In this document: positions 3,266 to 39,700 of the stretch, in pieces
Position numbering within the stretch: the stretch's first letter is position 1
Layout of the letters: each line of letters begins with the position of its first letter
From: Octopus bimaculoides
Taxonomy: Eukaryota
Assembly (NCBI RefSeq): GCF_001194135.2
Contig: NC_068986.1
Location: 37,937,143 to 38,001,142, forward strand
DNA length: 64,000 nucleotides
Direction of reading: 5' to 3'
Notes under the pieces: model-generated
Told to the model about the DNA's origin: nothing
Database searches by the model: none
The model's input: only the letters and a program-made list of their open reading frames with translations
Translations under genes and position numbers: made by a program

Positions 3266-4183
3266 TTAAGGTGTGCCTGGCTATCTGGAGTCATTTCAAC
3301 TCTGGCCACTGATATGGGCAACTGTTTCTACAGGTCTTAGGTCTGTGACTTGGCTGTGAGAAAGTATGGTCAGTTGGCAACTTATAATAGAGTTCAAGGA
3401 ATTGCAGGAGCATTTCAAGCCAGTAGAGATCAGACTACCAAACCGCTACCTTTGTAGCCAGCTTGAACAATGACACCATGTGGGGGTGACAGAATATCCG
3501 TCAAATGTAAATAATGTAAATAAGAGAATGCTGACAGTTCAAATCCAGATGTTGAGGCCCCCTAAAGGCTCCAAAAATTGAAATAATTTGAATGTGTAGT
3601 AACACAAGCTGAAACAGACCAGTGAAACAATTGGAGAGAATGGGTCCAGACAGCCTGTGGTGGAAAAAAGGAACACATCTTTGTGTGATAGAAGAATCAC
3701 TCAATATTGGTCCAGATCAAGAATCATCCACAGATGGAGCAAGGGATATGAATCCAAAGACTGTGGCTGACAAACATCTTGCCATTTCTGTAATCATCAA
3801 CTCTTTCCAATGCATCGTAGATGATAATAGATATTAGTTCAAAGAAAATAGTTAAGTACATGATACAAACATAATAGAGAAAATATTGCTTAATAAAATC
3901 AAATTCTTCAATGTACTTAAAACAGAAAATGGCTTTAGAGTAAAATAAGAAAAGGGTTTTTACAAAACTTCAATTCTGGCTCATAGTACTATATTGTTTT
4001 GTTTCTTTTTATCAGTTATATTTGGAAACAAATCATCTATTATAGACCTGATTATATTTAAGAGAAAACCTTTTGAAAACAAACAATTTATTATACATCT
4101 AATTATGTTCAACACAAAACTACTGTTTAAATGTTTCTGAATGGTTTAAAAAAACACACTTCAATTTCAGAATATTTAATAAA

Positions 4184-4185
<2 letters not shown>

Positions 4186-4230
<45 letters not shown>
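4186..4230. repeat. (TA)n microsatellite; many similar TA, GA and CA tracts occur, e.g. 4376-4435, 14780-15090, 19931-20020, 25920-25965, 34425-34590, 36638-36722
   Basis: Direct reading of the sequence. Confidence 0.95.
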
Positions 4231-4232
<2 letters not shown>

Positions 4233-5951: not shown

Positions 5952-7040
5952 NNNNNNNNNNNNNNNNNNNNNNNNNNNNNNNNNNNNNNNNNNNNNNNNN
6001 NNNNNNNNNNNNNNNNNNNNNNNNNNNNNNNNNNNNNNNNNNNNNNNNNNNNNNNNNNNNNNNNNNNNNNNNNNNNNNNNNNNNNNNNNNNNNNNNNNNN
6101 NNNNNNNNNNNNNNNNNNNNNNNNNNNNNNNNNNNNNNNNNNNNNNNNNNNNNNNNNNNNNNNNNNNNNNNNNNNNNNNNNNNNNNNNNNNNNNNNNNNN
6201 ATAAGCTCTGCCAAACATACGCCTCACTTCTTTCACATACAGACTCATACTATTGTGTACTCAAGAACTTGGTATAAAACTCTCACGTGTACTGACTTTC
6301 TATCTGCTGTGATATCTCACATACATATAGACAGCCTGTCTTTTATTATGTTCTTATATGTCGCAGTCACACTCTCACATACACATACATCTTTTATGCC
6401 ACACTAAATATCTCTTGTTATTCATTTCATACGGTTGTTTTTTTTCTATCGTCTTATTACTGGTATTTACGAAATCTATGTTATCGTAGTATAACATATT
6501 TGTATATCATCATTGAAAAATTAATTTTGTGTTCGACGTGTGACACGTTTAAATAAAAGGAGTCCTCTGTTTTTCCATTCGTCACCATTTCTCNNNNNNN
6601 NNNNNNNNNNNNNNNNNNNNNNNNNNNNNNNNNNNNNNNNNNNNNNNNNNNNNNNNNNNNNNNNNNNNNNNNNNNNNNNNNNNNNNNNNNNNNNNNNNNN
6701 NNNNNNNNNNNNNNNNNNNNNNNNNNNNNNNNNNNNNNNNNNNNNNNNNNNNNNNNNNNNNNNNNNNNNNNNNNNNNNNNNNNNNNNNNNNNNNNNNNNN
6801 NNNNNNNNNNNNNNNNNNNNNNNNNNNNNNNNNNNNNNNNNNNNNNNNNNNNNNNNNNNNNNNNNNNNNNNNNNNNNNNNNNNNNNNNNNNNNNNNNNNN
6901 NNNNNNNNNNNNNNNNNNNNNNNNNNNNNNNNNNNNNNNNNNNNNNNNNNNNNNNNNNNNNNNNNNNNNNNNNNNNNNNNNNNNNNNNNNNNNNNNNNNN
7001 NNNNNNNNNNNNNNNNNNNNNNNNNNNNNNNNNNNNNNNN
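5952..7040. other. assembly gaps 5952-6200 and 6594-7040 (others: 11052-11720, 14239-14628, 55791-55889, plus several 10-bp gaps)
   Basis: N runs. ORF-track entries spanning them are artefacts. Confidence 1.
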
Positions 7041-8645: not shown

Positions 8646-8750
8646 ACATATACACACAATCTATATTCAGTGGTAGTTTTTCAGGGGCGATAACTCTTAA
8701 ATTTGACTTTAAATTCTGTGAACTTCTTTCTAACCTGGAAGGAATTTAAC

Positions 8751-9333
8751 ATGTTGAAGAGCTCAGCTGTTGTATCAGTAAAATGGTTGGCATCAAGAAT
8801 GGCTTCAAAAGACCCATGCATTCGTATTCTGGATGGATCTTTTCATATGCCAGCAGCTAACCGTGATCCGAAGGCAGAGTATACAGCGAAACACATTCCT
8901 GGTGCTCTGTTTTTCGACATTAACGAGTGCGCCAATCAGAATTCCCCATACCCCCATATGTTACCATCACCTGAAGAATTTGAAGATTATGTACGTCGAA
9001 TGGGAATTAAAAATAACAGTCATGTTATTGTCTATGATACCAGTGAAAAGTTCGGGCTTTTTTCTGCAGCCCGTGTTTGGTGGACCTTTCGAGTATTTGG
9101 TCACGATTCCGTGTCAGTGTTAGATGGAGGATTACCTAAATGGCTTTCACTGAACCAATCGGTCACTGATAAAGTGGGGACTTTCACACCGTCTACATTT
9201 ATTGCCAAATACCGCCCCGAACTTGTTAAGAATTTTAACGATATCAATGATAATATCGAAAATAAATTCAGCCAGGTTGTTGATGCACGTCCCGAAGGCA
9301 GATTTCAAGGAACTGCTCCAGAACCCCGCGCAG
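8751..9333 (+). CDS. MPST: MPST exon 1
   Basis: First ATG after the in-frame TAA at 8691; donor G|gtaaat. Confidence 0.9.
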
Positions 9334-12300
9334 GTAAATTCTTTCGGTTTGTTTTTGAATATACATTTATGTAATTCGTGTTATTTTAGGGTTAATAAAT
9401 TAGTTAACATAAAATCAACGGAAATGTGACCTTTAAAGTTATGTATAAATGTACTTTTATTCTCTTATCTTTACAAACAGCTGATGTAGTCAAATTTTAA
9501 ACATTTCGGTTTACTGACATAGAGAAGAACGTTGTAGCTTGCTTGAGTCATTATGATGAAGTAAAATAACAGTATAAATTGTCCGTCATCAGACATAGAC
9601 ATATTTCTGATGATGGACTTTGGGTCTGAAATACATAAAAGTTATTAAACTTTTCTTTTTCGTATTGTAATTTTAATTTTTAACTGACCTACACGATCTT
9701 TGAGTGAAGTCCCACATCTTTCACTGCGCAGCTAATTTAACGGATCTAAATATACTGGACCCTATTATTATTATTATTACAAACAGTTGATGTAGTCAAA
9801 ATTGTAACATTTCGGTTTACTGACCTACAGAAGAACGTTGTAGCTTGCTTGAATCATTATGATGAAGTAAAATAACAATATAAATGGTCCGTCATCAGAC
9901 GTAAACATACTTCTGATGATGGGCTTTGGGTCTGAAATATATAATTGTTCAGTATAGGGAATTGTAAAAAGTAGAAAAAAAAAATTAGGGGGAGATAACT
10001 AGGTCCTCATTCTTTACTTACACCGAAATGTCCTTAACCGTGAATCAACCTTAGAGGAATTTTGGAATATCATTCAATTAGCCGAATCAAGAGACAAGAT
10101 TCTTCATTAGTTGGCACGGCATCGACTAATTATGAATATGTACACTTGCGAAAATTGTAATTCACCAAGTGGCTTCACTAATCGTGGTGACGCTATTGAT
10201 GGGAAAATATCGGTCTGTAAAAGGAGGAAATCAGTTCGTCACCGTTCAATTTTTTGATCGTTTATTGCTGGTCTCACTAATGTCGCAAGAAGAGGAAATA
10301 CTTCCGCCCGTCCCCGCAGCCCCATTTTCTCCCAAATTTGTTTATTTTTCTAATTTTTTTTTTTTTTTCCCAAAAAATCCCCGTTTTCGGATACGGAGGT
10401 TCCGGAAAATTGACAAAAATCAGCATTGTGAAATTCCCCCCCCCCCTTTCCCCCCAACTTCTTGAATTTTGACTTTTTTCCCCAACCCTAACACCCCAAT
10501 ACCTGTGGTGTATGCGTGCGAGTAGATGTAATCGCCTTACCTCGGTTTTCCTTTTGTCGACTGCAAGTCTGTCTTGCGGTATCCAATCCTTGAAGCTTGC
10601 CCCAACCCTAAGAACACCAGGAATAGCAGCTGATTCTCCCAAACCTAGACCGTCGCTTCGCACGTCTTGTCCTGACCACGACCCTGTTCAAAAAGGGCAC
10701 AAATCCCGATCGAGGCTCCCTCTGCCCTTTTTCTTCTTCCGGTCAGCCTCCCCAGACACTGACGTCATACCACACGCCACCCTGATCTTAAAGATCATGT
10801 TCACCCCTACTCCAATTCGAAGTTCGCCATCCAACTGGGCGGGCGCCTTACACATTGAGATCTTCTCAAGCCAGGTGGCTCGTTTCCATCGCGCTCTTCA
10901 TCCGACGAAGTGGCTATCCTGCGCAGGTCCAGCACGTGACGCGGCATTCTATCCACAGATACATTGTTTCTGGAATTGACTGCTGTCACTGTTCCCCTGC
11001 CCCATTGTGATGTGCAGCATGCCTTCGGAGGCTTGACCCAAACTTCCTCCCNNNNNNNNNNNNNNNNNNNNNNNNNNNNNNNNNNNNNNNNNNNNNNNNN
11101 NNNNNNNNNNNNNNNNNNNNNNNNNNNNNNNNNNNNNNNNNNNNNNNNNNNNNNNNNNNNNNNNNNNNNNNNNNNNNNNNNNNNNNNNNNNNNNNNNNNN
11201 NNNNNNNNNNNNNNNNNNNNNNNNNNNNNNNNNNNNNNNNNNNNNNNNNNNNNNNNNNNNNNNNNNNNNNNNNNNNNNNNNNNNNNNNNNNNNNNNNNNN
11301 NNNNNNNNNNNNNNNNNNNNNNNNNNNNNNNNNNNNNNNNNNNNNNNNNNNNNNNNNNNNNNNNNNNNNNNNNNNNNNNNNNNNNNNNNNNNNNNNNNNN
11401 NNNNNNNNNNNNNNNNNNNNNNNNNNNNNNNNNNNNNNNNNNNNNNNNNNNNNNNNNNNNNNNNNNNNNNNNNNNNNNNNNNNNNNNNNNNNNNNNNNNN
11501 NNNNNNNNNNNNNNNNNNNNNNNNNNNNNNNNNNNNNNNNNNNNNNNNNNNNNNNNNNNNNNNNNNNNNNNNNNNNNNNNNNNNNNNNNNNNNNNNNNNN
11601 NNNNNNNNNNNNNNNNNNNNNNNNNNNNNNNNNNNNNNNNNNNNNNNNNNNNNNNNNNNNNNNNNNNNNNNNNNNNNNNNNNNNNNNNNNNNNNNNNNNN
11701 NNNNNNNNNNNNNNNNNNNNATTACTGTTCCTACCCAGCCGACCACAGTGGCCGGATCTCGATCGAGCGCAGCCCCCATCTCAGGGCCAAGTTCACCCCT
11801 TTCAGCACCGCATCTAGTTCAGTGACATTGATGTGGTTGAAGTCGTCCGCTTTCCATAGCCAGGCCGCATCCTCCACCTCAGCACCTTCGATCTCCAACA
11901 CAACCCCTATCGCTATACTGCTAGCATCACACCAAACCGTGCCGCACTCCGTCTTGAGCACATAACAGTTTCCTCTGACCGGGTCTTCCACTCTTGTTCT
12001 CTCTAGGATTTCCCGCATCATCGCCTCTTCCACCTTGTCACTCCAACTCTCCCCCTCTGCTCGTCTCTGGTGTAACTGCATGCAGTGCCTAGCCAACCAG
12101 CGATTGGGTAGTGTCCAATCAACTTCCCACAAACCGAGAACAACTCTCTCCTGCTGACACTGGAACTCAGCTCTGGGATCTCGTTTCCTCTCCGGAACAA
12201 CAGCTCGCCCGATCTGTCTTTTTGTAGCTTCAGCCCCAGCGCAGCTACCCTCACCATCGACCCAAAGAACACCAGAAATAGCAGCTGCTTCTCCCAAACC

Positions 12301-14798
12301 TAGACTGTCACTTTGCACGTCTTGTCCTGACCACGACCCCGTTTGAAAAGAGCACGAATCCCGGTCGAGGCTCCCTCTGCCCTTTTTCCTCTTCCGGTCA
12401 GCCTCCCCAGACACTGACGCCATACCACAATACCGTAACCCTAATACCTGTAGCGTACTTCTCACTCTCTGTGTTATATATACATGAATACGGACGTAGT
12501 AGATAACAGCTAGCCTTCAGCTGCACCTTTGGACTCTGTTGTGTCCACCACTCTAATTGGTTGGTATTGGCACAGTTTGTCCTTTGCTCTATTTGGCGCC
12601 AAGATGCAACCCAACCAATCGCAGCCCTCAGATAAGGTCATGTGAGACAGTCTTTTCTAAACTTCCACTGAGCTGACACCACGAATATAAAATGCTAGCT
12701 TTACGCTGTCTAGAATGCCAGTCAGTCAAGTTCCAGTTGATAGTCTATGCCGAACAGCTGATGTCAGATACAGACGGAGTACGGCTCTCGACTGAGTCCA
12801 TGATAAAGATTGCACGACCTTACTCTTTCACCAAAGAAAAGAAGGCAGTATTTCTCTGCGTAATAACCATATTGAAAGACATGGTATGGAAGACGCGAAT
12901 GAAAGGGATTGCGACAGGACAGTTCATCTCCAGACGAGGGCTGGTGAATTACTTCACCGCCCATCTTGCCTTCAAGATTCGTCTGGAAAGGAGGAGCCTG
13001 CCGCAAAGAGTATTCGTGAAAAGATGGAAGGAAGTCGTAAGAAAGATGAATATGCAAGGAGCTGTGCTAACACAGCCGGTCTGGGCATAGAAGAACAGGA
13101 AAAGATTACCAAAAGGAAATCAACCGGTGGGTTAGTGCACTAACCCAAAACCTGAAAAGAATCATTTAAATTTTTAACGTATATTATATTGGAGAGTATT
13201 GTAGTTCGCTTGAAGCATTGTGTATTGTTTGTAAAGAATAAAAAGTTTAGAATGGTACAACAATGCACAATAAAACAAAAAATGGACTCTATACCTGTTG
13301 TAATTTGGTTATCAATAGTTCGATGATATTTCGGATTTACAATTTCTTCTTCAGATCTTCTTAGCTGGAGTATATTATATTATTTTATGTTATATTATAT
13401 TATATCATCCGCAGTTGTATAAACTCATTCATATTGAATCATTTGTAAAAGCATGACTGACCCCTATATGTCCTTGTTTGTCCCCTTTATGTATCCTTGT
13501 ATAAGGAAACAAAGAAATTCAGTCAGTCCGGCTCCAGCCCGTCTGAAAGTTTTGGTTAATGTTTACAACTTGATCCGGAAACGAAAATCAGAAAAAAGTA
13601 GTGGAATGGGTGTAAAAAAATGGGATCTTTACCCTTTGAACGGCAAATCGAGAAATTAATTTTTTGTAACTAAACACTTTCAAACTTCGGACACTGGTAG
13701 AATGTGTCATATAAAACATCTTTTACTCTTAGTGTTGTAGAGAAAAGTTTCTATTTTCAAAGTTATTTCATGTTAAAGTTGTCGTATTTTGGTAATTTCA
13801 ACCAATCAATGACATGTATTCAGCTGAATAAAATTACTGCTGTTGCTTGTCAACAACAACTTCTGGCAGTTTATATTTTGTTTGTCACTGTTATTTATGA
13901 CATATTTCATCTCAGTTATGTTTGTATGAATAAACGAGTGTATGTGAAGCACGTTTACTTCATGGCACCACCACAATCGTTTGTGCATTTCTACTGCTTT
14001 TAGTTTTTTTTTCCTGTTTTTCAGCTACTATTTTTGGAAAAACTCCCCCCCGTACCGCTCCAATTTCTTCATTTTTTCAGTAACTCTAACCCTAAAACCC
14101 TAACCCTAACCTTCTAACCCTAGCTTTAAAACCCTAACCTAAAACCAGTACAAATGCACGAGCGATGTCATAAATAACAGTAACAAATGAAATATACACT
14201 GCCGCTAGTTGTTGTTCACAAACAACGGCAGTAATTTTNNNNNNNNNNNNNNNNNNNNNNNNNNNNNNNNNNNNNNNNNNNNNNNNNNNNNNNNNNNNNN
14301 NNNNNNNNNNNNNNNNNNNNNNNNNNNNNNNNNNNNNNNNNNNNNNNNNNNNNNNNNNNNNNNNNNNNNNNNNNNNNNNNNNNNNNNNNNNNNNNNNNNN
14401 NNNNNNNNNNNNNNNNNNNNNNNNNNNNNNNNNNNNNNNNNNNNNNNNNNNNNNNNNNNNNNNNNNNNNNNNNNNNNNNNNNNNNNNNNNNNNNNNNNNN
14501 NNNNNNNNNNNNNNNNNNNNNNNNNNNNNNNNNNNNNNNNNNNNNNNNNNNNNNNNNNNNNNNNNNNNNNNNNNNNNNNNNNNNNNNNNNNNNNNNNNNN
14601 NNNNNNNNNNNNNNNNNNNNNNNNNNNNGGTTTTTGCAATGAAATTTTATCTAAATACCTTTCAAACTGCATACATTACGATTATAAAGAAATTTGTGGG
14701 TAAAGTCTTTTCCAAGGGGTGGGAAGAGGACTTTGGAAAATTCACAAGATCCGAATTTTTCCCTCATAACTGTATATATATGTGTGTGTATGTGCGTG

Positions 14799-14830
<32 letters not shown>

Positions 14831-17800
14831 TATATACTCTCGGAGTGGTTGGCGTTAGGAAGGGCATCCAGTTGTAGAAACTCTGCCAGATCAGATTGGA
14901 GCCTGGTGTAGCCATCTGGTTCACCAGTCCTCAGTCAAATCGTCCAACCCATGCTAGCATGGAAAGCGGACGTTAAACGATGATGATGATGATGATAATG
15001 TGTATATATATGTGTGTGTGTATATGTTTGTGTATATATATATGTGTGTATATATGTGTGCGTATATATGTGTGTGTATATGTAATATATGTATATAATA
15101 TATCTATCTATCACAGAACACATCAAATTTGTCAACATGTGCTTCCTTGCAGATAAAAGATTTTTCAAAGATTGCTTGGATTCACTTGTTACTATGGCAA
15201 CAGGCACGTTGAGAGACAAATGAGTTTTCATGTTCCGCTTCTTACTCTCAAAACAGGCATGAATGTGTCTGGTTTATGATTGGCTAAAATTACCAAAATT
15301 TTCAAACTTTAATTGCTAATAACTTTTTATTCATTGATTTATAACGAAAATGACTTTCATGTCATTAATTAGCCTATAAAAGTGTATCATTACACTGAAT
15401 ATGAAATCAATTCAAACAGAATTGATGCTGGCAAGCAAAACTCTAGCTGTAATTGTTAACGATTGTCAAACAGCAAAAGAGATAATTTTAAGAAATTAAG
15501 AATTAATTCCCCTTTACATGCTGAGAGGAATGCTTAATCTGTGTTTACAAACAAAAGTTGTTGTTGTTGGCACTCCGTCGCTTACGACGTCGAGGGTTCC
15601 AGTTGATCCGATCAATGGAACAGCCTTGAAGTTTTGCACCAAGTGCAATGTATTTATAAAAAAAAATCTACAAAGGTGCAGGCATGGATGTGTGGTAAGA
15701 AACTTGCTTCCCAACCACATGGTTTCAGGTTCACTCCCAAGCTGGTGTCTTATACTATAGACCTGGGTCAACTAAAGCCTTGTAAGTGGATTTCATAGAT
15801 GGGAACTAAAATAAGCCTATCGTGTGTGTGTATGAATGTGTTTGTATGTATATGTGTGTGTGTGTGCCCTTGTTTGCCCTCTGCTGCCACTTAGCCAGTG
15901 GTGTTGATTCGTTTACATCTTCGTAACTTAGGGAGTCAAGTAGAATAAGTACCAGACTTAAAAATGAGGACTGGAGTTGGTTTGTTCAACTAAACCCTGC
16001 AAGATAGTGCTCCAACATGGCCACAGTCTAATGACCGAAATAAGTAATGGATAAAAGATTAAAAAAATCAAGAGGACCATAATGGAACACTGCTCCCACA
16101 TTGGGGATGGTGTTGCTGCTACACATACAAATATCATAGACTACTCTGAGAATGACCACTTGACTGATTGGCATTAAACCACTAACAGACATGCCCCAGA
16201 CATTGGCTTTCAAGTGTAATGTCTTCTCTCTTTGTCTTTTCTGTCACTACTACAATGGCCTCTGTTCCATGGAGCTGGCTAGTTTTGTACCTTCTCCAGT
16301 CAAGCACCCTTGGCCCACTTGTTTCTCCATTTTTCATCACTCTTTTTACATTCACTCCACCCCCCACTTTGTACTAATCACAAACTCAGTCCCTTTCTTC
16401 CTAGAACATTGCACTTCTGGACTCTTTTAACTGCTCATGTTTTTCCTGCAGGTGTTGATCTACAATAATATTAATAGAACACTAACAGCATCAAGGTTAC
16501 AAATTGTAAAAGGTGCATAAAGGTCATGGGCACTGAACTGTCCCTTCCTCCAAGACAAAGCATCTAAAAAACACAAAAAGCATTGGGGTGTAGATTGATT
16601 CTCAACCAGGGCTGCTATAACTCCTGATAGATCTTATATATTGTTGTGGAGTCAAATATTTCGTAATGTAAGAGTCCATAATTTTAATTTTGTGTAGCAT
16701 TAATCAAATGAGAGAGAAATATTATTTGTCTTGACAAGATGCTAGTCTGCTACAAGAAAATTACTCAGAAGTTTAATGACTATTCTCAATGAATGGTTGT
16801 GATGAAACAAAGAGAACAAAATGTCATACTTTAAATCTGCAAGTACACTTTAGCGGGTGCAATTTTGCTTTGATTATACTCCTGTAAGATACAAAAGAGC
16901 TAGCAGTCATGGTTTAGTGTCAACAGCGGAAAATGATGTTTCTATTAATTAGTGAGCTATAAACACAAATTCATGTAACCACCTGCTTTTGTGTCTTCCA
17001 AGGGCAGAGTCAAATAAAATTGACCCCACTAATGTCTATTCACAGATTTAAGTCCCAGATTTTCTTTTATTTTCTGATTACTTGTTTTCCAACCTCTGTG
17101 ACATTACTGTTTTTGTTTTAGCCCCACCACCACCACCACTTACACAAGGCATAATGTATTCAGAACTACATTGTCCCATGTCTGTTTCCTTTTCTAAGAC
17201 AATAGAGTATATTCTGAGGGCAATTCACAGTTGCTGGTCTTTTGCAGATGCAGTGACTGCATGAAGGTTAACTCATTTGCTCATTACTTACTGTTGTTGC
17301 ACCACAGCTCAACTCCAGTTCAACAGATCTATAATTGACAGTGTTCCAACCATGATCAATGATTATCTTTTTTTTTTTTGAGCACAGTATACAAGGTGTA
17401 TTCCATAAACTTTTTCAGGAGAGACAGCTATTAATTTCAATTAAGTACAAAACTCTAATCTCCTTCAAAGTAGGATCCTCTGACTTTAGTGCATTTGTTG
17501 TAGTACTCATGAAGGTCCCATGCAAGTCCTCCTGAAGAGGAGGTGTCCAAGACCCTTGTTATTGCCTCCTTCATCTTCTCAGTATCTTCAAAATAACTGC
17601 TCCTGAGGCTCTCCTTCAGCTTGAGAAATGACAAAGTCACAGGAAGCAAGGTTTGGACATTATGAAGGGTGAGGGACAGCTTTGATGCCCAAGTAGTTAG
17701 TTACCAGGATGCTCATCACTGGGTATTTTGTTATCAAAATATAACAAGACAGTCTGATTCCTGCCTAATAATTCCTATTAATTATTGTAATTAAAAGTGG

Positions 17801-19926
17801 CTGCAGGAGAGTCTGAAGTTTGTAATGTTTTTTTTTGCTTTCTTGTAGATATCAAATCAGGTCATTTTCAAGGTGCTACCAATATTCCTTTTACTAGAAT
17901 TCTGAACTCTGAAACTAAAACCATACTAAAGAAGGAAGATCTCTTAAAAACATTTGAAAATGTCAACATAGATTTAAATAAACCAATTATTGCATCCTGT
18001 GGGTCAGGTAAGATTCTGTTGATATTAATTCTAAACAAGTAAAAACTTTTTTTTCTCAGATTTCAATATGAGCATGTGTGAGCTGTAATAAAGATTATAC
18101 TTGTTATATTTCAAAGATCATGTGAGAAAAATCTACTAGGAATTCTTATAGAAATTGCTCTTGAAGCTCCAAGCAAACCAAAGAAAGCACCTCAAAACAA
18201 AAAATAAAGACCATTTCTATTTTATAAATGATTAGCAATAAGATGCTCATTTGTGGTCTTTTAGCTAAGGTAGACACTGACTGAGCATTTCCTTGACTAA
18301 AGACATTTCAGCTATGGCAGTCTAACACTTTTTTGTACATCACTGTTCAACAGGACTTACTTCCTTCCTTTTGGGATGGTGGGGTGTGATTGAAAAGGTA
18401 ATTTGGCTACTGATTCTAACAGATCAAACAACCACATAGAGGCTTCTTAATTCAAATCCAATTGTAATAATGTTGTCTCAACTATTCCTGCCAATGACAG
18501 ACATTACTGAAGCCAGTTAACTCAATTTGTGCATTTGTGATGAATGCATTCTTGCACAGAAAATAATACAAAGAAATTTTTACTGAGTAGTAAGATATTA
18601 AGATTAGCCTCAACTTATGCATTTATATTAACATTTGGTTCTCTTACCTTCAATATGTTAACCTTTCTTCTATGTCACAATCACCATGATTAAAAGAGCA
18701 GTGCATGGCAGAATCAAAAGAGCACCAGATAAAATGTCATACTATAAGTGATAATGTTTCTTAATATTCTTTAGTCCAACTACCACCTAAATCAACTTGC
18801 TTTTCATCCTTCTGGGTTTGATAAAATAAGCACCAGTCAAGTATATGGTTAATTGTATCACATATACCCTTCCTAAGAAAAGTTTGGCCTGGTACTTGTT
18901 TATATTAGAAATAGTTATTACTATCAAAAAGAGATACAGGTGGCATAACAATGGAAAAATGCTTTGCAATATTCCATTATAGTAAGGCAGCAAGCTGGCA
19001 GAATCATTAGCACACTGGACAAAATGCTCAGCAGCATTTTGTCTCTACACTTTCTGAGTTCAAATTCCACTGAGGTTGACTTTGCTTTTCATCGTTTCGG
19101 GATCAATAAAATGAGTACCAATCAAGCACTGGGGTCAATATAACTTCAGGCTTTGTGCCTATAGTTGAAACGAATATTTGGTTATATTCTGAGTTGAAAT
19201 CCTGCTATGGATAATTTTTTTTTTTTTTTTTCATTTTGTCAAGGGACAGTAAAATAAAATATATGTCAACTACTGGAGTTGATATAATCAACTATGCTGC
19301 TTTGCATTATCTGAGGCATTGCACCCATATTAGAAACCAAAATTTAGTTACACCCCTATACATTCACTCCTGCCAATGTTGACTACTTTTCTGCTTTTTG
19401 AAGTTGTTAAAATAATTTCATCAATTACACCCTTCTAAAATGTTTGGCTGTGTTAAGTGTTGACAATCAGTAGCATAATTTATTTTTTAAAAGAAGAGGT
19501 GCAACAATAAATTCTTAGCAAAGTCAAATATAGATTCATATGACTAAGCCAAAACTAGTCTGCATTCTAGCATATAAAAATTGATAAAGAACACTACAAA
19601 TAAATCTTTACTGAATAATAAAAATTGATCAAAATATTAACCTCATTTTACATGCTTTTATTTGCACCTCTTTGGGCTCTCCTACCTTCAGTATACCAAC
19701 TATAAGTTTTCTTCAATTTCTTTCCATGGTGCTGACAGGGAATAGTAAAATATAGGATCTAGCATTTCTTGGATAAACTCCACGTAATATAACAAGTGTT
19801 CCAATGGTTCAATTCAATATCAGTGAGGTTCAGTCCCACTGCATGGCACCTTGGGCAAGTGTCTTCTACCATAATCCCAGACGAACTAAAGCCTAATGAG
19901 GGTGCTTGGCATATGAAAGAAACCTT

Positions 19927-19967
<41 letters not shown>

Positions 19968-20436
19968 ACACACAAACACACNNNNNNNNNNTGTGTGTAC
20001 ACACACAAACACACACACATACAAACACATGTATGTGCCTCCTTGTCTTGACATTACATGAAAGTTGTAAACCAATGTTACTGTAATATAAACAGAGGCA
20101 TTTGTTTTAAATCTGCTGAAAACATTAACTTGCTTGCAAACAATGTGAGAGTTGATGACAGGAAAAAATCTACAATGAATTTTCTTAAGACCAATGCAAG
20201 CATGGAAAAGTGTACATTGTGATTATATATATATGCATGTGTATGTAATAAAAGCATTTCTTCTTTGATAATTTACCATTTCTTGATTCTCTTTTCCAAC
20301 TTTTGCAGGAGTGTCAGCATGTTGCATTGCATTAGCAGCCTATTTATGTGATTATGAAAATGTCTCTGTTTATGATGGTTCTTGGACAGAGTGGGCACAG
20401 AGAATCAGTGCAGATAAGATCTTATCTAAGAACTGA
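8751..20436 (+). CDS. MPST: 3-mercaptopyruvate sulfurtransferase (tandem rhodanese domains), 289 aa; exons 8751-9333, 17849-18007, 20309-20436
   Basis: GT-AG introns, both phase 1; 870 nt in total. Motifs HIPGALFFDI, SAARVWWTF, DARPEGRFQGTAPEPR, active-site loop CGSGVS (MPST-type, not TST CRKGVT), VYDGSWTEW. Confidence 0.92.
9471..9946 (+). repeat. about 170-bp direct duplication at 306-bp spacing, each copy ending in a hammerhead-like motif
   Basis: 9471-9640 vs 9777-9946. CTGATGA-T-GG(A/G)C..GTCT-GAAAT(A)(C/T)ATA at 9607 and 9913. Confidence 0.8.
10028..10300 (+). mobile_element. Merlin/ISXO2-like DNA transposase N-terminal remnant
   Basis: From 10051 reads LEEFWNIIQLAESRDKILH*LARHRLIMNMYTCENC...AIDGKI..CKRRKSVRH.SIF, resembling the WL...C..C...DG..WxC..C..KSIR.GS.F zinc finger. 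Stops and a frameshift are present. Confidence 0.5.
10504..12429 (-). mobile_element. internally deleted Ty3/gypsy-like LTR retrotransposon (partial 5' LTR, RT thumb/RNase H, gap, integrase C-terminus, PPT, 3' LTR)
   Basis: 3' LTR 10504-10774 (TGTGGT...ACCACA); 5' LTR piece about 12265-12429 (about 92% identical); ATACC TSD at 10499-10503 and 12430-12434. RNase H WCDASS...HINVTELDAV...VVGWV; integrase tail EEVWVKPP...LRRSQCVRRPPSWMANF ending at 10807; PPT AGATCAGGGTGGCG. Confidence 0.8.
12692..13245 (+). mobile_element. L1/Tx1-like LINE, 5'-truncated ORF2 C-terminus and 3' UTR
   Basis: AVFLCVITILKDMVWKTR...LVNYFTAHLAFKIRLERRSL...FVKRW resembles Tx1 ORF2 ends; AATAAA at about 13238. Confidence 0.5.
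13830..14238. mobile_element. palindromic non-autonomous element with a telomere-like (TAACCC)n centre
   Basis: 74-bp inverted repeats at 13830-13903 and 14165-14238, degenerate CCCTAA repeats at about 14085-14146. The right side runs into a gap. Confidence 0.6.
14835..14996 (+). mobile_element. young RTE 3' end inserted in a TA microsatellite
   Basis: Nearly identical to the copies at 1-214 and 30112-30255. Confidence 0.85.
15674..16050 (+). mobile_element. tRNA-derived SINE with internal (TG)n
   Basis: GGTGCAGGCATGGATGTGTGGTAAGAAACTTGCTTCCCAACCACATGGTT head; same family as 19800-20090, 25500-26172, 37775-37935 (-) and 47960-48080. A fragment of another SINE lies at 15555-15625 (-). Confidence 0.75.
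16100..16490 (+). mobile_element. CR1/Jockey-like LINE 3' end
   Basis: PQTLA...SLCLFCHYYNGLCSMELASFVP...FLPRTLHFW...HVFP, typical of CR1-group ORF2 C-termini. Confidence 0.65.
17390..17715 (-). mobile_element. mariner transposase 3' fragment with terminal repeat
   Basis: Reads ...LKLKESLRSSYFEDTEKMKEAITRVLD...YNKC.KVRGSYFEGD*, preceded by a decayed HP.YSPDLAPCD; ends at TA. Confidence 0.7.
17849..18007 (+). CDS. MPST: MPST exon 2
   Basis: ttgtag acceptor; DIKSGHFQGATNIPF...KPIIASCGS; G|gtaaga donor. Confidence 0.92.
18770..19175 (+). mobile_element. two adjacent copies of a second tRNA-derived SINE family
   Basis: GGCAGCAAGCTGGCAGAATCATTAGCAC...TTCTGAGTTCAAATTCC...TTTTCATC motifs; further copies at 27177, about 32550, 40730, 41590, 44700, 45480 and 48885. 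Confidence 0.6.
19800..20090 (+). mobile_element. tRNA-derived SINE
   Basis: GGTTCAGTCCCACTGCATGGCACCTTGGGCAAGTGTCTTCTAC intact head (the reference for the NUMT junction). Confidence 0.7.
20309..20436 (+). CDS. MPST: MPST exon 3
   Basis: ttgcag acceptor; GVSACCIALAAY...VSVYDGSWTEWAQ; TGA stop. Confidence 0.92.
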
Positions 20437-22336: not shown

Positions 22337-23586
22337 TTGAGTCATCACATAAATAGTGCGGGTTTTTTTCAATTGCATTAACTAGAAGTTGGAGGGGTAT
22401 GGGATAAACTACTTGCATCAACTTGCTATAAAATCAGGTAGTAATTTCAACTTATTCTTAGTGCAAGTTTTGAAGAGTACAGTTTGATTTAACAGTTATT
22501 TTTTCAAATCTATAATGGAAGTGACAAAGGAGAATATTCAGTATATTTTGTTTTATGAGTTCAATAAAGGCAACAATGCAACAGAAAGTGCGAGGAATAT
22601 TAATGAGGTATATGGGATCAGACAATAAGTGTAAGCCAATGTCAACAGTGATTCCAGAAATTCCAAGCTAGAAACTACAGCCTAGAAAATGAGTCTCGTC
22701 CTGGAAGATCTGTAGAGCTTGACAAGGATGTCTTGCAAACCCTGGTGGAACAAAATCCCATTTTAACTGCTGAACTAGCAGAGAAGCTTGGATTTAGTCA
22801 TTCAACCATTCATCAACACCTGTGTGCCATCGGAAAAGTCAGCAAATTGGGTCAATAAGTTCCTCACAAATTTTCTGAATCTAATCGTGTGCAGAGAGTG
22901 AATGTGTGTTCTTCTTTGCTGTCACATCTCACGAATGAACCTTTTTTGGACCAAATAGTGACTGGTGACGAGAAACAGGCTCTATAAGAATGTCAAGAGC
23001 TGAAGATAGTGGACAGGGAAAGAAGAAACACCCCAGGCTAAAAAAGGTCTTCACCTATGTAAGGTGTTAGCTGTTTGGTAGGATATGAAAGGGCTAGTCC
23101 AATTGGAACATTTAAACCAAAACCAAACAATAATAAAGGAGATCTACTTCAAGCAGCTTAAGTCAGCACTAGAAGAAAAATGACCCTCTTTGGTTTCAAC
23201 ATGAAAAGTGTTCTTCCATCAAGATAATGCTCAGCAACATAGAGCGAGGATGACATTCCAAAGGCTAGAGCAGTTTGAATGGGAAATGATGCCCCACCCA
23301 CCATATTCACTGGACATTGCCCCATTTGATTATCATTTATTCCAGTCTTCAAAATCATTTGGATGAGAAAAATATGAATTTTGTAGACGAGGTCAGAACA
23401 ATACTGGAGGAGTATTTTCTGTCATGGACAAGTGAATTTTGGAAGAGGGGCCTTGCAAGTTTACCAGATAGATGGAAGAGCATTGTAGAAAATGAAGGAG
23501 AATACATTTTAGATTAAAAAAGAACTTTATCTTAACTGAAAAACAAAAGAAGTATAAAAAACCACATTATTTATGGCATGACCCAA
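22337..23586 (+). mobile_element. full-length degenerate mariner (DD34D) element, 1250 bp
   Basis: TA-flanked imperfect TIRs of about 30 bp (TTGAGTCATCACATAAATAGTGCGG / CCACATTATTTATGGCATGACCCAA). Transposase from ATG 22515 (MEVTKENIQYILFYEFNKG) to 23517 with VTGDEK, HQDNA and HPPYSLDIAP.DY motifs, broken by stops and frameshifts. Confidence 0.9.
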
Positions 23587-24102: not shown

Positions 24103-25918
24103 CTAAAATAAGAAAGAAACAGGAGAGAGGGAAATATTAAATGACTTTTGAAATAATAATGTGTCATTCTTGAGTTTCTAAAAAGCAAAACAGGAAGAAG
24201 TTAAAAGAACTGTCACCCATATAAACATTGCAAATCAAACATTCATATAATAGTAATGATAGAAGTGGTGATGTATAGTATAATTTAATGAGTTTTTCAT
24301 CCAATATGTTCTTGTTAAATTTCCATCTGCTTCCCCACACTTCTTTGAGACCTCCTCATTCATAACTTTTTTTCTTCATCCTAGACTCATCTTTTTGCCC
24401 AAAGTAACAAAGGATGTCAATACTCATTCACCCATACCACCATTCCTATCACATTACCTCTCTCCTGTTGTTATGCTTGTATAACAAGGGATTTCATCGA
24501 ATCTGTTTGTAATCAATACACTCCTCATCATCACCCTTCTATACTACTATCACTCCCTCTCATCCAGATTGCTTGTTAATATACATCACTCTCTTTCTAT
24601 CACCACCTATTTCTAAGATTATCACATACTATCTCTGATCATCAAACATCACCTTCCTGTATTGCTAGCCACCACTCTCTCTTCTCTATATCACTCATTC
24701 TCTCTCTCTAACCAGTAAACAACACTGTTTACCATAACTTTCTGTCACCACTGTCTCTTTTCCATGATACCCTCCAGCATTATCTTCTCCATTACTCCCA
24801 CCTCCACATATGAAAATACATATATACATGACTAAAGGAAATGCATTAAAAGTCAAAAGATTCTCTTACGTTTTGGTAGTTTACTGATATCTGTGAGAGG
24901 AGTTACAGGATGTAGTAAACCAGGTAAGACATCTGCTGTATTCTTGCGGAGGTTCTTTAGAAATGCATGATTCAATAAACTGGAAAGAGGCAACCTAAGA
25001 GAAGAAGAAAGGAAAAAGGATTTTTAAAAAAAAGCATTTCAATGTCTTGCAAAAAATTAAATTTAAATATGATTCTTTTATTTTCAAAATGAAATAATGG
25101 AAATATCCAGATTTAAGAAACTATTCTCATTTATAAATTAAATCTTACTATCAACGAGAGTGAGTTTCTCAATTGTAGTAGATTTCTAAAACATACATGC
25201 ACACAAATTTGTGTGCATGTGTATACATCTATCCATCTATATATTATATACATGCATTAATGCTGTGCAAACATAAAAAATAAATAAACACTAAAAATAT
25301 GCTCAGTATATTAATGTAAAGATAATGATTCACTCTGCCACTAATAGGTTGATGGGTCAAACACCGAATAAGAACAGAGTGAATCAGTTTCAAATGAACA
25401 AATAAAATACAAGTTTTCTTTCTCTTGTTTATGGATTCAAACATGCATGTGTGCATTTGTGGGTGTGTGAGTGTATGTATCTAAAAATATATGTATATAG
25501 GCATAGGAGTGACTGTGTGGTAAATAGCTTGCTTATGAACCACATGGTTCCGGGTTCAGTCCCAGGTTTATATAATTTGATTTTTTATGTTAGTGTTGAT
25601 CATGGGCAAATAATAAAATTTATAAAAGTTTTGAATATTAATAAAAGGAATGAAAATTTATTATTACTTTTACATATTATTCCTTTGTTAATATTTATTT
25701 CAATTTTGATTATTTGATGTTTGTATAATTTTTGTAGTTATTGCGGGAATAACTAAGAGGGCTCAGATTCCATTTAGAAGTTGATTGCCTGCTGCAATGG
25801 CTGCACCTACTCCTGTTTCAGCTTTAGTTCACCTTGGGAAAGTGTCTTCTACTATAGCCTCGGGCCGACCAAAGCCTTGTGAGTGGATTTGGTAGACGAA
25901 AACTGAAAGAAGCCCGTC

Positions 25919-25976
<58 letters not shown>

Positions 25977-28036: not shown

Positions 28037-28068
<32 letters not shown>

Positions 28069-31000
28069 TCATGTGAGCTTCTTTCTCCAGGCACATATCA
28101 ACAAAGTTATGAAAAGCATAAGAAAATGTTCGGGTGTAAGCTGGTGAATCTTTGGCAATGTTTGTACTTAGCCGATTACCTAAAATTAGAATAAAATCTT
28201 TTAAAAATAAAACTACAAAAAAGAATAAGAATAATTTTTACTAAAATGACTAGATTCTTGAAAATTAGATTTCCAAACATTCATATCAAATATTAAAAAT
28301 CTAATATCACACTAACTATTGGGAGAATGGGATAAATTTTTCTTGTTTGAAATGTTTTCAGAAAAAGAAAAATATTAAGAAAAGAAAAAAAACATGAAGA
28401 AAATTAAAATCCTGATGTTCTAACTGATACAAATTTCAGCCAGAATACTGGTATACCAAAGATTTTCTTTCTTTTTTTTTTTGTTATTTTCATGATTCCG
28501 AAGAGAAGAGCTAGAACCTATTGCCAATTTTTCATGCTCTCTTAGACTGTAACAAAGAAACAACTGGGCCCCAACATACTGCTCACAAATTTGGGCTGGT
28601 GTAACAGCAGCAGATCCACACAAAACATTCAAGACCACCTCCACATAAAATCCAGTAGATTGGCAAAATTTACTTACCAACATACAAGTGAAGTAAGTGT
28701 ACAGATGTGCTGTTCTCTGTTTCTTCCATTGTTTCTCTGAACTAGTAAGTTGCATCCACCTCCACTCAAGCCCACTTGATGTATTCACCTCCCCCACCCT
28801 ACTGTTTCTCACATAGTAAACAATGCTTTCCAAAACTATAATGCCCTCTCTACCCATGTCTTCCCTGTTCAAGCTGAACATAAGCAGCATCAACTTTCCC
28901 AATCTGGGTGTGCTGGTAAATATCTTTTCCAGCTTATATAAGAACAGTAGTGTAGATAGTGTTCAGTTTGAATTGCCACAGGTTAGTGATTGGTAATGGG
29001 AAGAGTTAATATACAACAATGTTTCAAAATGCATGAAGTTTGGGGGATGATATTTAGTATGGTAGTATAATAATGTGTTGGTAAGTGAAGATCTAGATGC
29101 AGATATTTGCACTCAATGTACTATTCCAGAAAAATTTCAAAAATGTTCATAGATGAAACATCAAACAAAGATTAACCCATGCTAACATGAAAAACTGATT
29201 ATGACAATAATAACAATGTTAAAATTGAATTGTTTATCCAAATTTTTTAACATTTAAAAAAAAAATTTTTTTTAAATTATCAAAATATATCTGAAATGAA
29301 AATCTCTTAAAATAATAGTTAAACCAAATCCATAATTGAAAGGTTACAATAGTGAAGAAGTTGCTGAGATACCTAGCCAATTTTAACAGTAAACTACAAC
29401 AAAATAGTTGTTACTTCATAACTATTGCGAAGTAAAGAAGTATGTACAAAAGGAATTTTAAAGGTATTAATATGCAATGTCAAACTAAACAAAAATATTT
29501 TGTTTGTCATTTTATACAGAACTATCTGCAGCAGGCTGCAACTCAAACATTTCTAGTTTTAACATGTACAATCACTCCCAAACAAACCAGCACCTTTACA
29601 ACTCTGCTACAACAATAGCCTAAGATATATATTTCTTTCTCACAAACATAACAAATACATGCAAAAATAGTAGTAACACTGTCCTGCAATGCACAATCCT
29701 TAATAATAAGTGTAGAGTAACTTATTACAGATGTGTTCAAATAGAGTTCACAGACTTCAACATTGTATAAAATGTAATTAATTGCTGCATATCAGAATAT
29801 GCAGTGTGGTTCTCAACTAGATGGAGGTAGGTCATATTCACATATATGGATCAAAACAAGTTCTTCAATTGACGACCTACATACCAAAGGTGTGCTCAAT
29901 CAGGTTTGACCTGAGACTATGCAAGAGATTTCTGAGTAGAGGAACAATATAAGATTATTTAGCACAGTAATGAAAGTGGAAAATCTAATGAAAAGATACA
30001 TATGTGCAGTATGTACAGTGGGACTTAAAAATTAAAGTGAACAAGATATGATATAACAGGTTTAAGAAGATAATTATAACAATACAAAAGGAAAAACAGT
30101 ATTAAATCAACTGGCGTTAGGAAGGGCATCCAGCTGTAGAAACTCTGCCAAATTAGATTGGAGCCTGGTGTAGCCATCCGGTTGCACCAGTCCTCAGTCA
30201 AATCGTCCAACCCATGCTAGCATGGAAAGCGGACGTTAAACGATGATGATGATGTAACTGGATCACAACTTTAGAGATAGAACAAGATACAATAATTGGT
30301 ATTACAAACGATAAACTTTATTAAATAAATTTGTGTAACCTTTCAAGAAAGGAAATAGTTTCATAAAAATTTTAAAACATATGCTTTAAAAATAAACTAA
30401 ATATTTCAATAATTCTGAAAAAAGATGTATAATTAGAGCAATTAAAATAAGAAAATGATATTTTACTCAAAGTACTGTGGACGCCACCAAATTCATTGAT
30501 AGTGCGAGAATCAAGTAAAACTGGTTTGGTGCCATTTAATTTTGCTAAAAGCATCTGAAATAAAATTAACATATTTTAGATTTATAATCGTATTAAGTGG
30601 CATCGTTAACTACAATATGAATTTTGAATAAGTAGGAAACAGCTTTTTGGTCTGATTGAAAAGATGCCTTAATTTTTCTATGATCTATAATGTTCATAAT
30701 TGTACTGGATTAGAAGAGTGTTCTATTGGTAATAACATCGGTAACTTTGGCAGAGAATATCAAAGAGAAAATAGCTTTTTGCTTTGAATGCAGTCTCATA
30801 TGTAATCTGACCAAAAAAGAAGAGTATATTCTTGAAAGAAGAAATCTGATTGAATAACACAAGATTTCAAATAAAACTTGTGTTTAAATAGTTACAAAGA
30901 TGTGTGAGAACAGGCCAAATCTTTATTAAAACTTTCAATATTAAGTCTTAAATATACATTTTGAGCTGGAGCCACTTAATATGAGTTTGAAATTATAAAA

Positions 31001-34496: not shown

Positions 34497-36011
34497 NNNN
34501 NNNNNNATGAGAGAGAGAGAGAGAAAGAGGGAGAGAGAGAGAGAGAGAGAATGAGAGAGAGAGAGAAAGAGTGAGAGAGAGAGAGAGAGAGGAATCTTCA
34601 AAGTTGTTAGATGACTCAAAGTACATTTTTAAAAATATTTTAACAGCATTTTTACTTTACTGCTACATTAAATATAATTTTCCTATTCATTTTCAAAATT
34701 ACTCAAATGTTAAACTTATGAGAAAATATTAATCTGATATAAAAATTAAAATATATAAAACTTTAAGAAGCTTAATAGATATTCATAAGTATGAAAATAT
34801 ATTTTTTTTTTGTTAATGTTATTGTGATTAGTAATGAAGATTGATCATCTGACAGTAGGTATCTAACTGAAAGGTCCTGAAGATTTAAACTAAAACAAAG
34901 CAAATAACAGAAAATACGTTTCACTGACAATTTATTATGGGTAACTAGTAATGCTATTTAATAATCTTTTACTGGAAAGTTATAGAAATTTATCTCAAAA
35001 TATCACATAAACAAATTAGTTCAGTTTGAAAATTGGTACAAATAAATATCAGTAAGCAGATACAGTGATACCAAAACTAAAATAGTTATATGCAAGGACA
35101 TCAAAGTCATAGATATACTACGTAAAAGCCTATTGTCACACACCTACACATACATATATGAACATGACATAATAATAGAATACACAACATAAACACAATA
35201 AACTATCAAATTAATACATACCATATGCCATAAATGGCATTACAATCCAAAGTTCATGGTCATAAACAAATGTAGTGTGAAATTTCAAAATTTTGTCATG
35301 TTGTAGTTGCTGAACCAAGGCAATTTCTTTCTGGAAAGAACAAAATATCATTTAGAAAGGAATCTTACTAACAAAAGCAGAAATACAGATATTTTCATAA
35401 AATAAGATATAGTTTAGATATTCCACGATTTAAGCAGGATATGTTATAAAATAGCTAGTCAAGAATTGTAAGCAAGATATGGAATGACAAAGACAAAAAA
35501 GTAAGAGTTTTGTTTGCAATTTTAATGTATTACATCAAAGATAAATACAATTTACCTGTAAATCTGCAATATCTGTAAAAACATTTTCTAAGTCTATTTT
35601 CTTGATTGCAACATTTGTTCCTGATGGCCTATGTTTTGCCAGATAAACAGTGACTGCATCACAGAACCCATGACCTGAAGAATGTAATAAGCAGCAACAA
35701 CTTAAGTATTTAAATGAAAGTAAATTCTATTTTTATAAAGAAAACATTTGAAGCTACATGTAAGTGTGTGTAGGACCCATGGCCTACTGGTTAGGGTGTT
35801 ACTCTCATGATCACAAGATTGTGGTTTTGATTTTCAGACTAAGCTATGCATCATGTTCCTGAGCAAAACATTTCATTTCACATTGTTCTGCAATCATTTG
35901 GCACACCATGTACCTGTACCAGATAGATGTTTGACCACAAGCAAATTATCTGTGCAGGTTGCTCGATAAAAAATTGCAGAAGCCTCATTTGTTGTCTACA
36001 ACAGGACAGTC

Positions 36012-36060
<49 letters not shown>

Positions 36061-36677: not shown

Positions 36678-36687
36678 NNNNNNNNNN

Positions 36688-36725
<38 letters not shown>

Positions 36726-39700
36726 TACAGAAAATAGACTCCATCAACTGCTGGGGTGGGGGGGCTAGACGTAGTAGATAGCTTCTGTTATCTAGGTTGC
36801 CAAGTTAGAAGCGGAGGTGGATGATCTGAGAATAGCTGTGAGAATAAGAATGGGCTGGGCAAAGTTCAGAGCTCCTATCTCTGCTGGCAACAAAGGGCTT
36901 CTCTCTCAGAGTGAAAAGCAAACAGCTATGCTACAGAGCAGTGAAACATGAGCTGTGACAGCCGAGGACATGAAAGAAATGAAGCCAGTATACTTCGCTG
37001 GATATGCAATGTCAGTGTGCATGTTCAGAGTGTAAGCATCTTGAAAGAAAAGTTGCATTGATGATGACTCAGATATGGTGTGCAAGACGACTGCACTGGT
37101 ATGGTCATGTGATGCGTATGGAAGAGGACAGCTGCATAAAGAAGTGCTGATCTCTAACTGTGGAGGGAACCTGTGGTAGAAGTAGACCCAGGAAGATATG
37201 GGACAAGGTGGTGAAGCATGATCTTCAAACTTTGAGCCTCAGAAGCAATGACTGGTGACCGAGACCTTTGGCAATATGCTGTGCTCGAAAAGACCTGTCA
37301 AGCCAAGTGAAATAGTCATGGCTGATGCTGGTGTCTCGTAACTAGCACCTGTGTTGGTGGCACAAAAAAAGCACCTTTCAAGCATTGGGATTCATGGAAG
37401 CAAAGTAGCTAATACCAGTGGCACGTGAAAAGCACCTTTTGAGCATTGGGCTTGGAAGCAATGATGAATGACCGAGACCTTTGGCATTATGTTGTGCTTG
37501 AAAAGAAAACCCATCAAGCCAAGTAAAATACAATTGTGGCTGATACTGGTGTCATGCAAATGGTACTCTTGCCAGTGGCATGTAAAAGCACCCATTACAC
37601 TCTCGGAGTGGTTGGCATTAGGAAGGGCATCCAGATGTAGAAACCATACCAAATCAGACTGGAGTCTGGTGCAGCCTTCCAGCTCGCCAGCCCTGTTCAA
37701 ATCATCCAACCCATGCCAGCATGTACAACAGACAATAAATGATGATAATATATACACATGCATGCACACACAGAGTAAGCTTCTTTCAGCTTCCATCTAC
37801 CAAATTGACATACAAGGCTTTGCTTGAACTGGGGTTAGAGTAGAAGACATTTGCCCAAGATGCCATGCAGTGGGACTGAACCCAAGACCATATAGTTGGG
37901 AAGCAAACATCTTAACCACACACCCACTCCTGCCCCCTATATANNNNNNNNNNTATATACAGGCATGGCATGTTTTCACGGGTACCATTTGTATGACACT
38001 GGTATAATGGGCTGACATATTTATTTGGTACTTTAGAAAAATCAAAATAAAAAAACAAAATGCTATCCAGTTATGTTTCTTACCTATTAAGGAGTATAAT
38101 GTGTAATGTGACCAATTTGGTTCATACTTCACCATTTCTGCATTGTTTTCTGGAGAGGCCTCCAGTTGGTTCTCATTTGACTGAAATAAATAATTGACTC
38201 GCCAAGTTTTACAATAACATTTTATGGCTTAAAAAAAAAAATACAAAAAGCAGCCTTTAGACATTGGAGGTTTCAACAAGACAGCATAATGGAAGTAGAA
38301 AAATACACTTGGTCTAAAGACAGAATATATTACATTGTGAAGCATGTCAGAATACAGCCTCTTAATAGGAGGATAATTGTTAGAGTAGGACTTCAGAGTC
38401 TTTAACACAAACATTAAACTATTGCTGAAAAAAAATGAAGAAAGATAACTTACTGGATATTGTAGATCACGATCAAAAGGTGCTGAAACAGGTGAATCTC
38501 CTACTCGTGCCTTTGTGCATGCACAGTGCTGAAATGTAGATAAAAAATAATCTTCTATTCTTACAAGCAAAGAATAAACAAGATGAGGGCTGTCAAATTT
38601 TTTAAAAAAAGAAATACAAACCTTGTGAAATGAGTAAACAAACCCTTTATATATTTTAACAAAACTGCAATGTCTTTCATTTGTAGATATTTTTTTGTAT
38701 CTATCAGTATGATTTGTTCTTAATAGTCATTATTGCCATGGAATTAGTCACAGTAAACAGATCTCATTTATTTCCATCATCCCAACTCTTGATTTGTAGA
38801 CAAATATATGTGGGCTATATATGTAGAACAATATCAAGGATGAAATCATGGCTAATGACCTCAAACATAAATATTCTATTTTACCTTTGAGTAAAATATA
38901 CAATTTAAAGCAATCAAATTGCATATTACCATGAATGGCATACACTTAAGAAACACCTTCAAATATTTAATATGTAGCCTTTTTGCAACTCACAGAAAAA
39001 AGTAAAAAGTAAAATGAACATATACAAATAGATCTTTACTGATATTTTCCTTAAACGGGTTTTAAATTAAATTTGTTTTTTCACATTTTTAATCAGATGT
39101 CTTTTTCTTAAAAGGTCATACAATTAGCAACCAAGGCGTAACTGAATTCATATGTATTACTCATAAAATCCCTGGCACTCTTTTAAAACTTGAAGAACAA
39201 TTTTTTTTTACTAAGTGAGTATCTATTTATTTATGACTTGATATATATTATATAAAATGCTTAAAGAAAAATAGAAAAACACTATTTTAAGCTTCTTTAA
39301 GAATCTCTCAATCAAAACTATTAATACTTGGAAGCTACAATAATAACTTATAAGAAACTAAATATATGCTTCAATAGATATTTGATTTAATACCTTTCAG
39401 AAGTAATATTGAAATGTTTAGTTTTAAAATATAAAATAATAAAAATGACTTTCAAGGATATTGGCAAGAAAAATGTAATTTTAGTAGTATTTTGTACATT
39501 GTAAACCAGCCCCTGAGATATATTTCAACTTATTGGCATTTGTAAGAATAGTGGACAACAGCTGTTGAACAGTGAAAAATTTTAAGAATTTTAAACAAAA
39601 CCAGGTTTTGTTTTCTTTAAGAATAGAATATCAAGTATACTCATTCATACTACAAACAAAATTTTTTCATGATAAATGGACTACCACAACATCACAAAAT

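Follow-up and report, generated by a model that had tools for sequence, protein, structure and literature searches.

Introduction

The closest described counterparts of the locus reported here are primate NUMTs, copies of mitochondrial DNA (mtDNA) in nuclear DNA, that were inserted by non-homologous end joining (NHEJ). In these, mtDNA acts as filler in non-coding DNA, leaving no target-site duplication (TSD), a small flanking deletion and overlaps of 0-3 nt. The largest class, 'microhomology x blunt', which pairs one 'blunt' junction (<=1 nt) with one microhomology junction (2 nt), accounts for 33 of 90 primate NUMTs, and flanking deletions are found in 41 of the 90 (Hazkani-Covo & Covo 2008, PMC2567098). 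Non-contiguous NUMTs, with a mtDNA-mtDNA breakpoint inside the nuclear insert, are also known (Hazkani-Covo et al. 2010, PMC2820518; Wei et al. 2022, PMC9630118). In the literature we found no dedicated NUMT survey for molluscs or octopods. Heteroplasmic large-scale deletions of mtDNA itself usually have short direct repeats on either side.

Here we analyse a mtDNA insert in a window of 64,000 nucleotides, the window being the whole stretch of DNA that was examined. The insert resembles the primate NHEJ NUMTs in its place in non-coding DNA, its lack of a TSD, its small flanking deletion and its short overlaps, and it shows the commonest primate combination of one blunt and one microhomology junction. 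It differs from the simple primate NUMTs in its host, a mollusc and probably an octopod, and in holding two non-contiguous mtDNA segments. A mtDNA-mtDNA breakpoint within a nuclear insert is shared with complex or concatenated NUMTs; here, however, the pieces are collinear, co-oriented and close, like an internal deletion, and form neither a shuffled or inverted mosaic nor a multi-copy mega-NUMT. Deleted mtDNA molecules offer a second likeness, a collinear loss of several hundred bp across gene boundaries (nad4 end, trnH, nad5 start), but here no direct repeats are visible at the breakpoints in the reference sequence used, and the deletion is known from the nuclear copy alone. We regard the insert as an ordinary complex NUMT of a well-known kind, with nothing new in its mechanism, which fits the picture of mtDNA as a filler in end joining. 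We put at roughly 0.9 the probability that it is a real NUMT, inserted by end joining and derived from one mtDNA molecule.

Mitochondrial identity of the insert

As mtDNA reference we used L001, an octopus-type contig of 8646 bp from ENA metagenome ERZ25068665 (1.97x coverage). This is a relative, not the host mitogenome, and breakpoints, overlaps and age were all judged against it at a divergence of 11-12% from the insert. The contig carries cob, trnS2, trnT (minus strand), nad4L, nad4, trnH (2551-2616), nad5 (from 2616) and trnF, after which follow atp6, atp8, trnD, cox2 and cox1 on the other strand, and trnS1. The first-pass annotation had given nad4, trnH and nad5 as co-oriented neighbours in cephalopods, and they are so arranged both in L001 and in published data (PMC1544340). 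In L001 trnD lies between cox2 and atp8 and no tRNA separates cox1 from cox2, which is the order of two Octopus species and unlike that of the chiton Katharina; the A+T content of 74% also agrees with Octopus mtDNA (Boore 2006, PMC1544340). The nad4 gene of L001 is frameshifted near 2331-2369 and its nad5 is interrupted by an in-frame stop, both probably errors due to low coverage, and such errors could slightly inflate the measured divergence from the insert.

The insert comprises 268 bp on the plus strand (window 25564-25830/31). Its GC content is 26.1%, against 25.9% in L001, 34% in the whole window and 32-36% in the 2-kb flanks. A BLASTN search had been proposed in the first-pass annotation; run here against the relative L001 and not the host mitogenome, it returned two gap-free matches, both in the same orientation, which are separated by 624 bp in L001 and abut exactly in the window. 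The first, window 25564-25703, corresponds to L001 2374-2513 at the 3' end of nad4 (124/140 identical, 89%, E 6e-49), and the second, window 25704-25831, to L001 3138-3265 in the interior of nad5 (112/128, 88%, E 2e-42). This is far beyond chance, and 25564-25831 is mtDNA inside nuclear DNA. The parts of the insert are as follows.

25564..25703, plus strand: nad4 3'-end fragment; codons from 25565, 46 codons and 1 nt, ending 32 nt short of the nad4 stop codon
25704..25831, plus strand: nad5 internal fragment; codons 175-217 of L001 nad5, including a 27-residue nad5 signature
25703..25704, plus strand: internal mtDNA-mtDNA junction; L001 2513 joined to 3138, with 624 bp skipped

The protein comparisons agree with the assignment, made earlier from the letters alone, of the 3' part to nad5 and the 5' part to the nad4 C-terminus. 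Translated in code 5, the nad4 piece is identical to L001 at 40 of 46 residues and the nad5 piece at 40 of 43. The 3' peptide matches ND5 (PDB 8b9z_L, Drosophila ND5, residues 188-221, E 5e-14). When proteins were searched with the nad4-like peptide, the one match was P0001, the C-terminal ND4 piece of L001 (80% amino acid identity). The full ND4 of L001 in turn aligns with PDB complex I ND4 chains (E 3e-86) as far as residue 438 of 446, through the segment homologous to the insert. As a separate candidate, we considered whether the 5' part might be frameshifted nad5; this was rejected, as that part aligns to the 3' end of L001 nad4 and not to nad5 upstream sequence.

Searches for a closer source gave little. 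A protein search with the nad5 peptide returned distant ND5 fragments only, degenerate DNA scans of metagenome contigs for a closer mitogenome gave no match, and exact look-ups of five ORFs in or beside the insert found none on record. Outside the insert, the window holds no other match to the 8.6 kb of mtDNA covered by L001.

Host repeat and nuclear junctions

The insert splits one copy of a SINE-like repeat, as the first-pass annotation had proposed, and the two repeat halves, located by blastn of the joined flanks, lie directly on either side of 25564-25830/31.

25499..25564, plus strand: 5' part of the split SINE-like copy, ending in the B-box-like GGGTTCAGTCCCA
25830..25905, plus strand: 3' part of the split SINE-like copy, beginning CACCTTGGGAAAGTGTCTTCTAC; a (TA)n microsatellite follows at about 25920-25965

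The mtDNA is thus placed between ...GGGTTCAGTCCCA and CACCTTGGGAAAG of a single copy, which reads ...GGGTTCAGTCCCA[insert]CACCTTGGGAAAGTGTCTTC... in the window. The same search with the joined flanks located other copies of the repeat at 15689-15853 (plus), 5193-5028 (minus), 37931-37779 (minus) and 19820-19918 (plus). Across the insertion point, copies 19820-19918, 37931-37779 (reverse complement) and 5193-5028 (reverse complement) read ...GTCCCAC-TGCATGG-CACCTTGGG, and the family alignment reads ...GGGTTCAGTCCCAC-TGCATGG-CACCTTGGGCAAGTGTCTTC..., so that an intact, empty-site SINE would read ...CCCACTGCATGGCACC... at this point.

Compared with this family consensus, about 8 bp (CTGCATGG) are absent at the insertion point. 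Copy 15689-15853 has a gap of its own, of about 14 columns, at the very position that the mtDNA occupies in the split copy (25499-25905). The insertion point is an indel-prone spot of the repeat that varies among copies, and part of the 8-bp loss may pre-date the insertion because copy 15689 is also gapped there. The earlier statement that about 8 bp were lost with no TSD holds in full for the TSD, none being present at the insert flanks, while the figure of 8 bp depends on the family consensus.

At the left junction 1 nt (A, 25564) is common to the repeat and to mtDNA as represented by L001. At the right junction 2 nt (CA, 25830-31) are common to the SINE and mtDNA, or 3 nt should the His codon of the host mtDNA read CAC here. 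These values replace the 2-3 bp of microhomology previously claimed for both junctions. Overlaps of 1-2 nt are also frequent by chance, and are compatible with end joining without being proof of it.

A B-box-like motif, GGTTCAGTCCC, is present in the host repeat, of which the window holds at least five dispersed copies. It is on the motif and the dispersed copies that the description of the repeat as possibly tRNA-derived is based; no tRNA was recognised in it by Rfam (the window at the gathering threshold, one copy at an E-value threshold) or by ARAGORN. The SINE-like copies are commonly followed by dinucleotide microsatellites, and (TA)n or (GT)n tracts in such positions lie at 25920-25965, 19930-20020, 4179-4231, 14795-14837, 36015-36050 and 36688-36722.

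An RNA-mediated (retroposed) origin of the insert was considered and rejected: the nad4 piece ends 32 nt before the 3' end of nad4, and the insert has neither an A-tail nor a TSD.

STRAD intron and coding capacity

As the first-pass annotation had proposed, the insert occupies a STRAD intron. This intron spans about 3.1 kb of a STRAD orthologue encoded on the minus strand, and the mtDNA is antisense to the gene. A first lead came from tblastn with a human STRADA probe of approximate sequence, which picked out seven exon-like stretches of the minus strand. A concatenated translation taken from the window itself was then compared with PDB STRADalpha (2wtk/3gni), giving E 4e-82 and 278 bits, whereas the next kinase, OSR1, reached 114 bits. 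A search with the STRAD peptide returned no cephalopod protein; the best match was from the bivalve Pinctada, at 62%, as would suit a mollusc host. The exons that bound the host intron are as follows.

28067..28183, minus strand: STRAD exon upstream of the host intron in gene sense; donor GT just below 28067
24889..24979, minus strand: STRAD exon downstream of the host intron; acceptor AG at about 24980-24981

The intron is therefore bounded by canonical GT..AG, with its acceptor, in gene sense, about 585 nt downstream of the insert.

The insert had been described as stop-free only in the invertebrate mitochondrial code. This does not hold for the insert as a whole, since no frame is open across it in any code: the nad4 piece (read from 25565) and the nad5 piece (read from 25704) are out of phase. 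Taken separately, the nad4 part has no stops in the standard code either. The nad5 part has two in-frame TGAs in the standard code, which codes 4 and 9 (TGA=Trp) clear as well as code 5. What favours code 5 is AGR=Ser, which restores TKSAQIPFSSW. With only 46 + 43 codons the insert is truncated and unreadable under the nuclear code, and is not a functional gene. Its intronic and antisense position, its broken frames and its nuclear-code TGA stops all suggest that it is without function.

On the STRAD sense strand the insert accounts for two (25662 and 25699, minus strand) of the five AATAAA motifs in the ~3.1-kb intron. An influence of these on STRAD transcript processing is conceivable but improbable.

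Origin of the two-segment structure

Between the two pieces 624 bp of mtDNA are missing: nad4 lacks its final 32 nt, trnH is gone altogether, and nad5 is without its first 174 codons. The first-pass annotation had put the gap at trnH and roughly 200 nad5 codons; it was right about trnH, the codon count is lower, and the end of nad4 is gone as well. The overlap at the internal junction is 0-1 nt, and no direct repeats beyond the AT-rich background were found at the internal breakpoints in L001.

Homology to mtDNA is combined here with nuclear sequence on both sides (the repeat halves and the STRAD intron) and with a truncated content that the nuclear code cannot read, which marks the locus as a NUMT; two non-contiguous mtDNA segments within one insert mark it as a complex one. 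The lack of a TSD, overlaps of 1 and 2 nt and the absence of about 8 bp of consensus point to insertion of the NHEJ type. The most likely source of both pieces is one mtDNA molecule, because they have the same orientation, keep the mitochondrial order and lie only 624 bp apart. By our calculation, a random second fragment of a ~15.8-kb mtDNA (genome size from a table in PMC1544340) would be co-oriented and within 624 bp downstream with a chance of (624/15800) x 0.5 = ~0.02.

These data allow us to propose a course of events. A chromosomal double-strand break would have occurred inside the SINE-like copy within the STRAD intron, and escaped mtDNA would have served as the filler when end joining closed it. 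No TSD would have arisen in this repair, about 8 bp of the repeat would have been lost, and the 1-nt and 2-nt overlaps would have been used at the nuclear-mtDNA junctions. The filler would represent one collinear nad4-trnH-nad5 stretch with 624 bp gone from its middle. That middle may have been lost before or during capture, either because the mtDNA was already deleted or because a broken fragment was re-joined in the repair, or it may have been lost later within the NUMT. We would give roughly even odds to a loss before or during capture.

A later loss is the strongest alternative to that timing. Here a contiguous NUMT of 892 bp, containing the 3' end of nad4, trnH and the 5' third of nad5, would have been inserted first and then have lost 624 bp by a deletion in the nucleus. 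Such a sequence of events is a variant within the best explanation and not exclusive of it. It accounts well for pieces that are perfectly collinear, co-oriented and equally diverged from L001 (89% and 88%), and for a junction of 0-1 nt that is blunt like those of end-joining deletions; deletions of this kind are recognised in NUMT evolution (PMC2820518), and with the age of the insert unconstrained, time may have sufficed. In one genome, however, a donor that was already deleted gives the same picture, and if the insert is young, a loss of 624 bp falling exactly inside 892 bp presents a small target. We regard it as a serious possibility, though on balance the less probable timing. The first-pass annotation, which offered either a deleted mtDNA molecule or the ligation of two fragments, was in this respect incomplete, as post-insertion deletion explains the observations as well as both.

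The second of those options, in which two independent fragments, stemming from separate molecules or from breaks unrelated to each other, were joined together and into the break in one repair event, has precedent in documented multi-fragment or concatenated NUMTs (PMC2820518, PMC9630118), and the blunt internal junction would suit it. Against this, two pieces on the same strand, in mitochondrial order and 624 bp apart are expected in about 2% of random pairs. We therefore consider independent capture quite unlikely, and rank it as the least likely origin when set beside a deleted mtDNA molecule and post-insertion deletion.

An assembly or library artefact, with mitochondrial reads misplaced in a nuclear scaffold, might be suspected in a gapped draft with nine N runs and from the abundance of mtDNA in read sets, but is very improbable, as the halves of one repeat copy lie on both sides, the 1-2 nt shared at the junctions are too short for an overlap or k-mer misjoin, and the insert carries an internal deletion impossible in a functional mitogenome.

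Age of the insertion

Mismatches between the insert and L001 are concentrated at third codon positions (25 of 33, binomial p = 7.5e-7), and 80 of 89 residues are conserved. Because of this third-position bias, most of the 11-12% divergence must have arisen in working mtDNA and not in the nuclear copy. First and second positions hold 8 differences; if all of these arose after insertion, nuclear decay amounts to at most ~12 substitutions in 268 bp (~4.5%).

The first-pass annotation took the insert to be probably recent, which these data do not establish. A NUMT freezes while mtDNA keeps evolving, and an old insertion therefore fits the third-position bias too. Two situations predict the bias equally well: L001 comes from a different species, or it comes from the host's own species and the insertion took place long ago.

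At its boldest, a recent origin would make the insert a very young and still polymorphic NUMT that keeps the breakpoint of a heteroplasmic nad4-trnH-nad5 deletion once present in the germline of this mollusc lineage. We consider this doubtful; if true, the nucleus would preserve a 'fossil' of mtDNA that had undergone the deletion. If the insert is polymorphic or lineage-specific, it would provide an essentially homoplasy-free presence/absence marker and possibly a dating marker, although its practical value is small. The nad4 and nad5 pieces could also be co-amplified or mis-mapped in mitochondrial studies.

Other features of the window

STRAD has a neighbour on the opposite strand, a gene for a 3-mercaptopyruvate/thiosulfate sulfurtransferase (rhodanese), of which a long open exon at 8694-9371 (plus strand) covers ~190 residues from the N-terminus (PDB 3olh, E 5e-53). 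Remnants of mobile elements are present as well. At 52515-53710 (plus strand) two overlapping ORF remnants resemble a LINE-type reverse transcriptase, with matches to L1 ORF2p and R2 at E ~3e-9 to 1e-6, and a fragment at 22652-22855 (plus strand) is similar to the DNA-binding region of a SETMAR/mariner transposase (7s03, E 2e-9).

Nine runs of N occur in the window, at 5952-6200, 6594-7040, 11052-11720, 14239-14628, 19982-19991, 34497-34506, 36678-36687, 37944-37953 and 55791-55889, and they show that the assembly behind the window is a scaffolded draft with gaps. Several of the gaps adjoin microsatellites or SINE-like copies.
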